A stretch of DNA of 64,000 nucleotides from the NCBI GenBank assembly GCA_038087875.1, contig CM075988.1, forward strand, positions 13,206,001 to 13,270,000. The letters are read 5' to 3'. Below are positions 56,901-62,900 of the stretch, piece after piece. Origin of the DNA: Malacoraja senta (Eukaryota). How positions within the stretch are numbered: position 1 is the first letter of the stretch; every line of letters starts with the position of its first letter. A program made the position numbers and the translations under genes. The notes under the pieces are model-generated. The model ran no database searches. It saw only the letters and a program-made list of their open reading frames with translations, and was not told the DNA's origin.

Positions 56901-59900
56901 ATACATTGTAAATCTATTTGGCTCCTGCAATAGTGCCTGTCCTCTCTAACTGTAATATGGACATTTCTCAATCAGTAGTATATTTCTGATAGATCACCAT
57001 GGACAAGCTCTCCTCTGATCATATGTTTGGTTGTATAGCAGCAGCTCACAACTTTCCTAATCACAGTTACTTATGTTTCACAAATTTTAGTCCGCTGTTA
57101 TTCAAGATGAACTAAAAGTAATAAAAATAGCTTGATTGTTTTAACCTGATTGAACGTTTGGTTGAAGTAATGGAGAAGCTTGATGAAAGGAATGTGCTTG
57201 ATGTTTTCTCCACAGCATTTTAGAAAGCATTTAACAAAGTGCCACCTAACATGTTAGTGAATAGATTTGAAGTTGTTTTTTTTCCATGGATTTCTTTCAC
57301 CTTGAAGGATAATGGTCTACAATGAAAAGACATTCATCATTTGCCGTCTGGTTTCCACCTCATGACAAACCTGGCAGGTGGGACATTTCTCCTTGAATTT
57401 CCATGCAATGCCAGTGATGGTACCACCAGTTCCAGAACCTGCTACCAAAGCATCAACGTGACCTAAGGGAATAAAATAATGTCTTTCAGTTGCAATCTCT
57501 CAGATGCTGGATTATTTAGAATTGATTCAATGATTTTGTTGGAACTGCTCTATCGATGATTATCTTGATGATCTGGAGAATTGGGCCAAGAGCTGGCAGA
57601 TAGAATTTAACTCGGTCAAGTATGATGTGTTGCATTTTGATAACCTAAACCAGGCCAGGACTGACACGGTAAATGGTGACAAGATATAACATCCTGAAGC
57701 CGCGGTCTCCGGTAGGAAAGTGCCAATTCAGGACCTCCAAGCCATGGAGTGTGTTCAACCGTCCCGATGTCAGAGTTTCAAGCATCCCGTACATCGGGCC
57801 GACCGTAGTGGCGATTACGGGGGGCTTCTGGCCCCGACCACGGGTGAACAAGGAGGAGGACTGGCTGAACTTTGTTGTCTTCCACCACAATGAAGAATGC
57901 TGTGGTGGATGTTTGTGGTAAATTCTATTGTGTATTGTGTGTTCTTTTTTTAAGTGTATCGCAGCTGGCAAATTCATTTTACTGCACCTTCGGGTGCATG
58001 TGACAAATAACATTGACTTTGACTTTGGTAGGGTGCTGGAGAATGTTGTAGAACAGAGAGACACAAGGGTATAGGTATATTGTTTCCTGAAAGTAGTGAC
58101 ATAGGTTGACAGGGTGGTGAAGAAAGCATTTGGCATACTTGTCTTCATCGGTCATTGTGTTAGTACTTAGCTGGAATGTTATGGTGAAAACACACTTGCA
58201 GTATTGTGTGCAGTTCTGGTCATCCAGCTATTGAAAGGATGTCATTAGGATGGAAAGGGTGCAGAAGAGATTCACGGGGATGTAACTGAGACTAAGGGCT
58301 TGAATCAAGGAATGGCTGGACCTTTATCTCTGGTGCAAAAGGAGGTTGAGGGGTGACCTTAACCTGGTATATAAAATCCTGGGGGGCATGTACAAAGTGA
58401 AAGGTCACAGTCATTTCCCCACAGTAGGAGAATCTAAAATTAGAAATTATAGATATAAAGTGAGAGGGGAAAGATTTAAAAGGAATCTAAGGGGCAACTT
58501 TTTTTAGATGGAGTATTGTGAGTATATGGAATGAGGTTCAAGAGGAAGCTGGAAAGATAGGTTCAATTCTGATGTTAAAAAGACATTTGGACAGATACAT
58601 GAATAGCAACTGTTTAGCGGGAATAAGGGCCAAATGCAAGCAGATGAGACTAGCTCAGATAGATATCTTGGCCAACATGGGCAGGTTTGGACGAAAGGCC
58701 TGTTTTAATTCCCATCTCTTGAAACATAGGGCTGGCTAATTATTTGCAGCATTATTAGCAAAATTAAACCTCCATGAGATATTTTAGAACTGTATGATTG
58801 ATGTCCACATCATAGGGAAGCTGTGGCTCTTAGAATTATTATTTTAGTCCATGGTAACTGTGTTACCATCATTGATTTAACCATATGAAACATCACAGGA
58901 AAATAATGTAAAGGGCTTAAGAATGGACTAATGGCATGGCCTCTGTAAGTTATTCTCTGAAAATAATTAAAGAAACAATAATTAAAGCAGAGGGTACAAG
59001 GGGCTGTAGTGTAGGGGTAGAAATAAGATACCGATGATGAATTGATGGGACGGAAGACAATCTAGAACCAGAGGAACAATCCATGGGGACTGAGCCATAG
59101 GGCTATGGAATGTTTGGATGCATCAAGGCTATAGCGGCAAGTAAATAGATGAGAATCTGAATCCAGAAGCAAAGGTCTGGGCCAAGATTAGAATACATAT
59201 GTTCAGAGATTGATTTTACCCTGAACCCTGCACAGAGAACACAGAAACAGCAGAGCCTCAATTAAGAGCGAATTCCTCAGACAGATAATGAATGTCCGTT
59301 GGTGCATAAGTTAAAGAGTCACTTCCTACCCAAGTTACTGCTCTGAGTCTGTCACAGAATATAACCATGAATTCTCTGCTGCACCAAATGCTTCAGAATT
59401 ATCAAGAATAGATGTCTTTCTCCTTACTGAGGCAATGGAATGGGTGCTTTTGTTAGCTGATACTTTCCAAACACGTCCAATTCCTCCACCATCACAATAT
59501 CAAATTGTCCTTCGGAGTAATAAGGTGTCTTTCCTGCCACTCCTGTTACGTCACTGAAACCAACCCGACTACTGAACCAACCTCACTACTTGAACCAAAC
59601 CTGGTTGATTTAGGTATTTTTCTGTGTAACTCTTGAAATAGTGTATCTATGGGAATTGTGGTTGTATGAATGCCCCTGCTCTCAGTCCCAGAAGAAACTA
59701 ATGTGGGTTGGTTGTACAATGGCCTTTAACTGTGCATTTCCAGTCACATTACCAGTAACTTGCTCAGTATTCTATTTGTATTCTTAGCTCAGTCATGGAT
59801 ATCTTCTGCAAAAAAATCGTAACCATTGCACATACCATCACATTGATCCAGAATTTCCTCTGCCGTTGTGTCATAATGTGCAAATGGATTGCCTTGGTTT

Positions 59901-62900
59901 TGATACTGAGGACAAAAGAAAGTTTACATGACGTTTTCGTATATTTAAAAGCAACGCGTTGTCAGGCGTCACAGTTTTACTGGGAAATATTGGCGAATGT
60001 CTTAAAAATGTGAATTGGAGCTCTCGGAAACGTGTTTTCTCTGGAACATGGGAGGCTGAGGGGAAACCTGATAAATGTTTATAAAATTAGGAGAGGCATA
60101 GACGGAATCTTTATCCCCAGGGTGGGAATATCAAAGACTAGAGGGTATAGCTTTAAGGTAAGAGGGACAAAGTTTAAAGGAGATATGAGGGCAGATTTTT
60201 CTTATCGTTACACAGAGTGGTGAGTGCCGATATGATAGTGGAATTTAAGAGGGGCACATGGATATACAGGGATTGGAATCACGTTGAGGCAGAGGAGATT
60301 AGTTAAACTTGGCATCATTTTTGGTGTGGACATTATGGGCCAAAGGGCCTGCTCCTGTGCTGTACCGTTGTATGTTCTATGAAAATGGCACTACACTTTA
60401 TTTGAAATTATGTCATCTGCCCCCAGGGTTCAGTTTAAAATATATGTCTTACAATATGTTGATGTAATGTGTAGGATGTCTGTAGTTATAATGAGAGATG
60501 AGTGTTCACCTGATCAAACACATGTGAGTTTGGAATCTCTTTCTTCAATCTCCAGGCCATTTCAATATGTGAGTCAGGGCCAGTACAGTTTGCTGTATCT
60601 GGTGTTCTCACAATTTCCACCCCCAATGATTTCAACATATCAACCTGCATAAAATGAAAACACTTGAGTAAATGTGGTGGGAGATTGCAACCTTCACGTG
60701 GTCCACCCTGTTTCGACTAATGCTATCAAACAAGATCAAATAGAACAAGTTGACCTACAACTTTAGGCTGTGTACACCATATGCAAGAAGACGACTTGAG
60801 TAAATGGAGCTAAAGAAATGAAGGTCCAAGAATTTGGAAGGATGAGAGTAGATCTTATTGAAACAGATAAGGTTATTAAGGGATTGGACACGCTAGATGC
60901 AGGAAATGTTCCCGATGTTGGGGGAGTCCAGAAGCAGGGGTCACAGTTTAAGAATAAGGGGTAGACCATTTAGAATGGAGATTAGGAAATCTTTTTCACA
61001 TTAGAGAGTTGTGAAACTGTGGAATTCTCTGCCTCAGAGGCGGTGGAGGCTGATTCTCTGGATGCTTACAAGAGAGAGGTAGATAGAGCTTTTAAAGATA
61101 GCGGAGTCAAGGGATATGGAGAGAAGGCAGGAACGGGTACTGATTGTGGATGATCAGCCATGATCACAGTGAATGGCGGTGCTGGCTCAAAGGTCCGAAT
61201 GGCCTACTCCTGCACCTATTGTCTATTGTATAAAAGCCAGAAGTTTGAAGAGGCACAGGTTTTTCTATAAAAGCTTGCTGGTGTAGCAAGACACATTAAT
61301 GGACAGGAAATTCCACGCCATTTAAATTTTAATGCTGATGGAAAATCACTGCACATCCTTTTTGGGTGTTCTAGCTATAGTCTCACTGATGCTTTGTGCA
61401 GTCGTAGCAAAACTCACTCCTTTTCTCCAGAGACGCTGCCTGCCCTGCTGTGTTGCTCCAACATTTTGTGACTATCTATAGTTTGTCATATGCTTTAACA
61501 TTGATTCACAACCACAAGAGTTGCTGCCTCAAATAAATTGAAGCTTAGCATAAAAATGAACCTTTTTTAAATTTCCCCCTGGTACCTTTACCTTTTCTAA
61601 GCTCATCTTTTCTGGCATGACAATAATGCAGCGATATCCTTTCACCGCAGCTACCAACCCCAGTCCAAGTCCTGTGGAAAAATGAAAATATTTAAAGCAT
61701 TTGCCAGTGACAGGACCTAAAACCCTCCATCCAAACCCATGACCCCTTTTAATCTCACTACATTTTTCTGGAACGTTAGGTATGGGTTTGACCTTTTGAT
61801 TCCTCACCATGATTTTCCCTGGTTGACTGGTATGGAAGCGTAAATAAAAGTGTTTCCTAAAGTGGGAGTCATTTAATTCGAGACTTACAGTTCTACAGAT
61901 CTACAGCAAGAATGCACTTTAACTCCTGGTGAACTAACATTGACTTGAAAATTGACGAAGATCTAATCAGCTAAATGTGACATTTCTTGCAACAGAACTG
62001 GCTGGTATCCATGGGTGCAGTGGAGAAGGAGCAAAAGAAAACGATTCTTCAGAATAAAACCTTGAAAATGGGACACAAGCTCACTGTAAGATGACGCCGT
62101 ACCTGTGTTACCCGAGGTCGGTTCGATGATGACAACACCTGGTTTCAGAATCCCTTGCTGTTCGGCGTCTTCGATCATCCGTAAAGCAATGCGGTCCTTA
62201 ATGCTCCCAGCAGCGCTGAAGAACTCACACTTCGCCACTAGAACAGTTATTAACACAACTACGTGACTGCATCAACAGGAAAGGTTTAATAGGTTGTAGG
62301 TCAAATGCAAGCACATGGGACTAGCCCAGGAAAGCACCTTGGTCAACATGGAAATTGGGTTATGTCTTGATAAGCACTGTGGGTAAGTTGTATCAAACAT
62401 GAAGGAATGAATGAATGAATACTTTATTGTCACATGTGACTAGTCACAGTGATATTCTTTGCTTTTTTTTGTGCTTATACCCAAGGTATGCAATAGTCGC
62501 CACATAAAAAGCTCTTAAAGAGATGAAAAGACAAAAAGATAGATATTGACAAATATTTAAAGAATGAAATTCAAAATAAATATTTTCTTAAGAAACTCCC
62601 ATAAGAAAAATAGTGCAACCATGAATGAGAAAGGGATTTAGCTATGAAATAGAATGAAAATATTTATAATATTCCAAAAATGGCCGAACCAGTCTGAGTG
62701 TTAAAATAAATTTAAAATTCACACGAAGAATTTAAGAAACTGTCATGAGAATAAGTTCGAAAGAGGCATTGAACAAAGGTAAAAGCTTCTGCATGTCTCC
62801 ACAATGAAAGATCAGGAAAAACAAACAAAGGAAATGAAGAACAGAGAATAAAGAAAATAAAGAGATGTAGGCAAAGTAGTTGAACTAGAGACAATGTAAA

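Follow-up and report, generated by a model that had tools for sequence, protein, structure and literature searches.

We analyzed a 64,000-nucleotide stretch of DNA from the skate Malacoraja senta (assembly GCA_038087875.1, contig CM075988.1, positions 13,206,001 to 13,270,000; hereafter the window), the minus strand of which carries a gene of the cystathionine beta-synthase (CBS) family. A previous reading of the window (the original prediction) had proposed that this gene is intact and may be a deregulated or neofunctionalised second CBS, in which the heme sensor of the vertebrate enzyme is lost or rewired. Fourteen exons, running from 63211 down to a stop codon at 44816-44818, lie in the window and comprise 471 codons plus the stop. 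The frame is open throughout and every splice site is in place, with 12 of the 13 introns in the window being of the GT-AG type and one of the GC-AG type, and the gene is indeed intact within the window. The exon that encodes the heme ligands (exon 1) is outside the window, as had also been recognized. In the following list of exons, residues carry human CBS numbers, PLP denotes pyridoxal 5'-phosphate, AdoMet denotes S-adenosylmethionine, and L007 is a skate complementary DNA (cDNA) contig.

63108..63211, minus strand: exon 2, the first in the window; start and junction set by cDNA L007 229-332, 99% identical
62103..62237, minus strand: exon 3; SIKDR with the Schiff-base Lys119 kept; N113S, G115A and V118I; SGNT of the asparagine loop
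61592..61671, minus strand: exon 4, mapped by cDNA L007
60510..60644, minus strand: exon 5, ending in NSHVFDQ with Q222 as its last residue; mapped by cDNA L007
59836..59905, minus strand: exon 6; Y223, Q224 (human R224), N, Q226, G227, N, P, F230 (human L230)
57371..57462, minus strand: exon 7; GTGGT loop for the PLP phosphate, with T257 and T260 unchanged; helix 8, whose last residue is W266 (R266 in human CBS); CPTC (CXXC)
55692..55817, minus strand: exon 8; active-site loop with Y308H at 55722-55724 and D309N at 55719-55721
54460..54544, minus strand: exon 9, mapped by cDNA L007
52894..52999, minus strand: exon 10; GSSGS with S349 kept; GC donor
51099..51167, minus strand: exon 11 (linker), mapped by cDNA L007
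49894..50028, minus strand: exon 12 (first CBS motif); AdoMet FDQ replaced by SAN within 49902-49928
48217..48325, minus strand: exon 13, mapped by cDNA L007
45733..45817, minus strand: exon 14 (second CBS motif), mapped by cDNA L007
43746..44901, minus strand: last exon; stop at 44816-44818; GVVTAID replaced by SVVTFMD, with T535 and D538 kept; 3' untranslated region of about 1.07 kb

The reach of the 3' untranslated region to 43746 is given by the cDNA, positions 1559-2719 of which correspond to 44902-43746. At 63211-63217 the acceptor of exon 2 is a tandem CAGCAG (NAGNAG), of which the cDNA takes the downstream AG; the AT of exon 1 and the G at 63211 make a Met codon at this junction, whereas splicing at the upstream AG would lengthen the frame by an Arg codon. 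The GC-AG intron follows exon 10, where the donor GCAAGT at 52892-52893 is confirmed by the related-skate cDNA. Human numbering was anchored on solved human CBS chains (query residues 2-30 equal 248-276 of 5mms_A, which places the tryptophan on Arg266), and the stretch back to residue 222 is free of insertions and deletions in every alignment; when the 25-residue piece encoded by exon 6 was compared with PDB sequences there was no match, the piece being too short. The codons are CAA for Q224 (59900-59902), CAA for Q226 (59894-59896), TTT for F230 (59882-59884) and TGG for W266 (57401-57403). Exons 6 and 7 are letter-for-letter identical in DNA contigs from a public run of the same species, a run that may be the sample behind the window assembly.

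The CBS-like gene is spliced and transcribed. The skate cDNA contig (2,719 bases, with about 97% identity over the exons) aligns with precisely the 14 exons listed above, and spliced RNA contigs of two further runs join exons 3-4-5 and exons 5-6-7-8. Moreover, the catalytic core is under strong purifying selection: the ratio of nonsynonymous to synonymous substitution rates (dN/dS) between skate and sawfish has an overall value of 0.20, with 0.10-0.13 for the core and 0.33 for the C-terminal part, and among skates it is 0.13-0.24. Exon structure and length are the same in skate and sawfish, and in the skate Amblyraja radiata the gene outside exon 1 is still constrained.

Ray orthologues and their place in the CBS family

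Relatives were found with a purpose-built profile (three scaffolds and four copies of the core exons, pre-tested with hmmsearch); other profile designs, with C-terminal exons or with under three scaffolds, were discarded because MAFFT misaligned the window fragments. This profile placed four ray proteins above nearly all other vertebrates, and their cluster mates gave more. The orthologues, 80-97% identical (81-97% for those compared with the window protein), come from skates (Amblyraja radiata, Rhinoraja longicauda and Leucoraja erinacea), sawfish (Pristis pectinata), electric ray (Narcine bancroftii), manta (Mobula birostris and M. hypostoma) and stingray (Hemitrygon akajei). All of them are named 'cystathionine beta-synthase-like' at NCBI, where the genes are annotated automatically; in the literature searched, we found no account of a CBS paralogue in cartilaginous fishes, or of cystathionine in rays or skates. 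Among the matches listed in the profile search, no shark or chimaera protein stood above the canonical background. A single-query search with an insect CBS listed insect and nematode matches only, and a protein-atlas search returned generic CBS clusters only. Exon-level open reading frame (ORF) fragments considered as candidates for a canonical ray CBS were set aside, as one was from a teleost and two contigs that shared no repeats were uninformative.

The window protein shares 60-62% of its aligned residues with bony-vertebrate CBS; bony-vertebrate CBS sequences are 76-84% identical among themselves, and the identity between hemichordate and vertebrate CBS is 69%. Window introns are about 92% identical to those of A. 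radiata. In a maximum-likelihood tree (LG+C20, 39 sequences), the ray sequences form a monophyletic clade (100/100) that lies inside the vertebrates (100/98) and outside all tetrapod sequences in the tree, as sister to bony-vertebrate CBS (91/79). The ray stem measures 1.14 changes per site, the bony-vertebrate stem 0.07 and the branches within rays 0.01-0.2. The window gene belongs to a fast-diverged, batoid-wide CBS branch and is not a canonical CBS. The branch lengths of the tree, taken with the codon comparison, describe one episode of rapid change with purifying selection after it, rather than decay. The long stem, short crown branches and low dN/dS fit a functional shift better than decay, in agreement with the shifted function that the original prediction had proposed, and suggest that one such shift took place in the batoid ancestor, most likely after gene duplication. 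The position of the clade is compatible with an orthologue, or with an old or batoid-specific paralogue.

Pfam recognizes the PALP domain in the ray orthologues at 250-259 bits; its CBS domain (PF00571) is absent or scores 17.9 bits at best, under the cut-off of 24 that an alligator control passes with 33.5. The protein encoded by the skate cDNA was modelled with AlphaFold2; the model has a mean predicted local distance difference test (pLDDT) score of 74 and aligns to full-length human CBS over about 500 columns at 57% identity. Residues ~380-505 of the model form two beta-alpha-beta-beta-alpha units, at pLDDT 82-94, that are alignable to the full-length human enzyme. The root-mean-square deviation of the domain layout is about 9 to AdoMet-bound human, Drosophila and Apis structures and about 16 to basal human CBS, which is a weak indication. 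The N-terminal 39 residues have pLDDT values below 50; we dropped this confidence as a proxy for heme binding because the heme loop of a canonical control is also low (54-65).

Heme pocket, active site and AdoMet site

Nine ray sequences were set beside canonical CBS from vertebrates (112 sequences) and CBS from invertebrates (103 sequences), with the following outcome.

PLP-binding set K119, N149, T257, T260, Q222, Y223, G305, G307 and S349: kept in vertebrates; kept in rays wherever covered
Arg224: R in 112/112 vertebrates; Q in 8/9 rays, E in 1/9 (Rhinoraja)
Arg266: R in 112/112 vertebrates; W in 7/9 rays, R in Amblyraja and Rhinoraja
Position 51: R in 67 and K in 41 vertebrates; Q in 6/6 rays with the N-terminus
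Tyr308: Y in 112/112 vertebrates and 100/103 invertebrates; H in 9/9 rays
Asp309: D in 112/112 vertebrates and 93/103 invertebrates; N, K or Q in rays
Gly115: G in 112/112 vertebrates; A in the 8/8 rays covering the site
Asn113: N in 112/112 vertebrates; S in 7/8 rays
443-FDQ-445: near-invariant in vertebrates; (S/A/L/M)-A-(N/C) in rays, SAN in the window
Gly532 and Ala536: G and A in vertebrates; S and F in rays
Thr535 and Asp538: T and D in vertebrates; kept in rays

The PALP domain with its Schiff-base lysine is present, as is the PLP-binding set (Asn149 of SGNTG, the G256-T260 loop and Ser349), in the window and in all rays, and these features identify a CBS-family enzyme. Up to residue 265, neither helix 8 nor the loop around the PLP phosphate differs from canonical CBS. 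Three features of canonical CBS are absent: the rim of the active site is altered (H308, N309, A115 and S113 in the window), the second-sphere arginines of the heme are replaced (W266 and Q224 in the window; Q51 in rays), and neither AdoMet motif, 443-FDQ-445 or 532-GVVTAID-538, is retained. The statement that the catalytic core is conserved consequently holds for the PLP-binding set and fails for Y308H, D309N, G115A and N113S, which fall on metazoan-invariant sites; changes in the AdoMet site, which the original prediction had mentioned, are present as FDQ to SAN and GVVTAID to SVVTFMD. Across the core, the window departs from 38 of 206 vertebrate-invariant columns (18%), and 10 of 114 metazoan-conserved core columns are changed clade-wide, including R266W, Y308H, D309N, N113S, G115A and V118I. 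The corresponding figure for the C-terminal part of the window protein is 29 of 60 conserved columns. The predicted Pristis isoform X3 (P0418) is without 12 residues that include the Asn149 loop. If real, it would be without the substrate-carboxylate loop; an artefact of the annotation or of an alternative donor is the probable explanation.

Codons and alignment confirm the substitutions read by the original prediction around the heme, namely the TGIAWK motif with W at human Arg266, and Q224, Q226 and F230. Its further claim that these represent a concerted change of the heme pocket stands for R224Q/E (9/9 rays) and R266W (7/9), to which the comparison adds R51Q (6/6), and the chance that both heme-contact arginines would be changed at the rate of 38/206 is about 0.03. 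The remaining two, A226Q and L230F, are uninformative: among the 112 canonical vertebrates, position 226 is occupied by P 67 times, by A 44 times and by V once, and L230, present in 112/112 of these, is F in the window species alone among the nine ray sequences. At residue 266 the codon change is a single-base one (TGG vs AGG/CGG).

Looking up the upstream exon of the window species via a 97-residue ORF gave only contigs shorter than 1 kb. In relatives the heme-ligand segment can be read. The N-terminus of the skate cDNA protein is short, with MMEELEAKGKVEPNHPSQCIGSLGTPPSKCLHSKDLM joined to NSPKIL, and the context of the ligands has changed from CTW to CIG (W54G) and from SPH to CLH. Pristis keeps the ligand segment (SQCTW...KSPHS). 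His65 is Leu in Mobula and Pro in Narcine, where the Trp is also gone, and Hemitrygon has Gly for Cys52 and Gln for His65; the axial ligand is lost in 4/9 ray sequences in the case of His and in 1/9 in the case of Cys. In A. radiata, coding exon 1 (contig L001) consists of two halves, 9222-9305 and 9969-10003, split by a 663-base repeat at 9306-9968, and because of this split the NCBI protein of that species begins at the exon 1/2 junction codon. Given ligand loss and exon splitting in several lineages, the sequences indicate that the heme-ligand segment is dispensable or degenerate in these rays. The non-coding 5' exon of the related cDNA maps to 1381-1455 of the same A. radiata contig. Exon 1 of that species has its 3' end 1,349 bases past the point that corresponds to base 64000 of the window.

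Surroundings of the gene

Copies of the repeat family that splits A. radiata exon 1 occur in the window at 23398-23827, 46865-47242, 60829-61231, 2234-2446 and 55174-55323 (75-81% identical), and the copy in intron 4 (~60700-61300) has enormous read depth in all four runs. Of two open exons on the plus strand, the one at 6305-6655 encodes an immunoglobulin (Ig) V-set domain that scores 39 bits, and the one at 12058-12411 encodes an Ig_3/I-set domain that scores 36/29 bits. They look like parts of an Ig-superfamily gene in convergent orientation to the CBS-like gene, facing its 3' end. The window is without a homeobox motif of the PKNOX type, and no genes are called within 10 kb of the locus in Amblyraja or Pristis. 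The canonical CBS locus has U2AF1, PKNOX1 and CRYAA as neighbours, and an Ig neighbour without a PKNOX-type motif weakly hints that the present locus is not the ancestral one. Two long ORFs are typical of retroelement remnants: 32905-33987 on the minus strand (360 residues, no Pfam match, in a region with a GC content of 0.48 and strong GC skew) and 133-573 on the plus strand (146 residues, an ALKBH8_N-like match only). The window has an assembly gap of 200 N at 23196-23395.

Proposed function of the ray enzyme and comparison with known systems

In human CBS, helix 8 is the relay from heme to PLP: the thiolate of Cys52 is touched by Arg266 at one end of the helix, and the PLP phosphate is held by Thr257 and Thr260 at the other (PMC6040266). 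Phe443-Asp444-Gln445 and Asp538 bind AdoMet and transmit activation, with FDQ and GVVTAID forming the AdoMet site (PMC4276868), and Gly307 positions the catalytic Tyr308, the human G307S variant being inactive (PMC6411801). The batoid CBS-like branch has kept the PLP core and has undergone clade-wide alteration of the heme pocket, the AdoMet site and the rim of the active site. Set against these assignments, it is reasonably probable that the skate protein is an unregulated or re-purposed enzyme of sulfur metabolism. It would remain a PLP-dependent beta-replacement enzyme, and a constitutive one. Given W266, Q224 and Q51, and in skates also G54, a bound heme would be without its thiolate and propionate partners, so that the helix 8 relay would receive no input from the heme side. 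In addition, the C-terminal module would not be able to bind AdoMet canonically with FDQ gone, and loss of the relay anchor together with FDQ would uncouple activity from carbon monoxide (CO), nitric oxide (NO), redox state and AdoMet. The His308-Asn309 pair probably changes the second substrate (nucleophile) or the reaction preference. For the window protein itself, we lean toward the absence of a stable heme; a heme that is bound but uncoupled or retuned is a good deal less likely, and an essentially normal one is improbable. Going further, rays may, though we put this forward tentatively, hold an ordinary CBS beside a duplicate about 200-300 million years old that has shed heme and AdoMet control, has remodelled the nucleophile side of its active site (His-Asn for Tyr308-Asp309) and catalyzes a different constitutive beta-replacement or hydrogen sulfide (H2S)-linked reaction.

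Several observations weigh against the main interpretation, that of an unregulated or re-purposed enzyme. Exon 1 of the window species lies beyond base 64000, and the skate cDNA keeps Cys and His as C-x12-H, with the canonical 13-residue spacing. The original prediction had held that an upstream exon with an intact Cys/His motif would, together with a normal Soret band, speak against heme loss, and half of that is what the skate cDNA presents; the case for heme loss gains from the decay of the ligand segment in Mobula, Hemitrygon, Narcine and Amblyraja and loses by the retention of both ligands in the cDNA. Arg266 is present in Amblyraja (P0308) and Rhinoraja (P0415), and Trp in the window species, Leucoraja and other rays; the arginine in these two skates may be either a reversion or a retained ancestral polymorphism. 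RNA depth over the spliced contigs is low (~3.5), and one of the two runs was flagged as probably DNA. Arg51 and Arg224 are the reported partners of the heme propionates in the human CBS structure of 2001. Finally, the duplicate status of the gene is something that we infer: duplication in rays is favoured, and appears quite probable, because of the rate pattern and the changes at otherwise invariant catalytic sites. A less likely alternative is that the skate protein still binds heme through the kept Cys and His, its sensor being adjusted rather than lost by the substitutions of residues 51, 224 and 266, with a more labile thiolate and an altered redox or gas response. C-x12-H in both the skate cDNA and Pristis, and the unaltered helix 8 and PLP phosphate loop up to residue 265, would accord with such a sensor. 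However, the thiolate partners are gone in the skate cDNA (W54G and R266W), as are the propionate partners (R51Q and R224Q), and sister lineages have lost the ligands themselves. The exon is broken in A. radiata although the remaining gene is constrained, and ligand loss and exon disruption beside such constraint speak for a dispensable segment.

It is somewhat less likely again that the ray gene is the sole CBS of these animals, a plain orthologue that evolved fast on the batoid stem and performs ordinary transsulfuration with no duplication. The clade does take the position expected of a chondrichthyan orthologue, bony-vertebrate CBS being its sister group, no canonical ray CBS is among the best 120 matches listed in any search, and the window holds no second CBS copy. 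Nevertheless, those best-120 lists were flooded by other vertebrates (in the profile search, canonical CBS score 616-627 bits and the lowest listed match 616), so that the absence of a canonical ray CBS from them carries no weight. Y308H and D309N affect sites that are invariant in the 112 vertebrate and near-invariant in the 103 invertebrate sequences, and G307S, which perturbs Tyr308, abolishes activity of the human enzyme (PMC6411801). Furthermore, a long stem such as this one (1.14 changes per site) with normal rates after it is what duplicated genes usually show, and the Ig-superfamily 3' neighbour and the missing PKNOX-type motif weakly point the same way. A decaying pseudogene or non-functional duplicate might account for the 29 changed C-terminal columns, the CBS domains below Pfam detection and the truncated NCBI models of some species, but it is very improbable in view of the open frame and the splice sites, the exon structure and length shared by skate and sawfish, the core dN/dS of 0.10-0.13, and the full-length cDNA with its spliced contigs. 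Least credible of all is the idea that sequencing or assembly went wrong at these residues, or that fishes in general vary there. Variability at A226 and the private L230F would suit it, whereas contigs of the public run match the window at both exons, and Q224 in 8/9 and W266 in 7/9 rays stand against arginine at both sites in 112/112 other vertebrates.

With human and other canonical vertebrate CBS (for example PDB 4COO, 8S5H and 1JBQ) the ray protein shares the order of a short N-terminal segment, a PALP domain and a putative C-terminal tandem CBS (Bateman) module, together with Lys119, Asn149, the GTGGT loop, Ser349, Gln222, Tyr223, Gly305, Gly307 and the CXXC motif. Sequence identity to these enzymes, however, stands at about 61%, where orthologues of such age are about 80% identical; its N-terminus is some 35 residues shorter and has no WIRPD or CPH motif, and it differs in R51Q, R224Q, R266W, Y308H, D309N, G115A, N113S, FDQ to SAN and GVVTAID to SVVTFMD. 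In the 112 vertebrate sequences the heme ligands and Arg266 are invariant and FDQ is near-invariant, and the role of the CBS heme is debated, with a gas sensor, a redox sensor and a folding aid having been considered. The ray lineage may serve as a natural experiment in which regulatory features decay stepwise under strong selection on the catalytic core: Cys and His are kept and the second sphere is changed in skate and sawfish, manta, stingray and electric ray have gone on to lose ligands, and in the thorny skate (A. radiata) a repeat interrupts the exon. Comparing the ray proteins would show how the core of a vertebrate CBS functions without heme and AdoMet control.

The CBS enzymes of yeast and Toxoplasma gondii have no heme, and those of Drosophila and honeybee contain heme and are constitutively active. 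These naturally heme-less or AdoMet-insensitive enzymes establish that the core works without heme and without AdoMet activation; they represent old lineages that either never possessed these controls or lost them long ago, and in which Tyr308-Asp309 is kept. Heme is also absent from the CBS of prokaryotes and unicellular eukaryotes (PMC6040266). The ray changes differ from all of these in having arisen inside the jawed vertebrates, where heme and AdoMet control are otherwise invariant (112 sequences). If the duplicate reading is true, this would be the first natural heme loss in a jawed-vertebrate CBS; if the gene is the sole ray CBS, vertebrate transsulfuration would be able to run without both classic controls. 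His308-Asn309 may point to an undescribed elasmobranch sulfur reaction, perhaps linked to taurine, H2S or osmolytes.

Two CBS genes in one vertebrate genome have a precedent in teleost cbsa and cbsb (PMC5820354). Both teleost copies, in contrast to the ray gene, are canonical at every examined site and have short branches. A closer counterpart may be the cysteine lyase of sauropsids, reportedly a CBS duplicate re-purposed for cysteate and taurine synthesis in eggs, in which the fold and the PLP chemistry are said to have been kept, the specificity to have been changed by few active-site changes, and the heme to have been retained. The ray clade is independent of it, as the tree does not group ray with reptile or bird sequences, and the sauropsid sequences in our set keep R224, R266, Y308, D309 and FDQ, unlike those of rays. 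Should the ray gene be a duplicate, as we suppose, it would constitute an independent parallel to the cysteine lyase of reptiles and birds.

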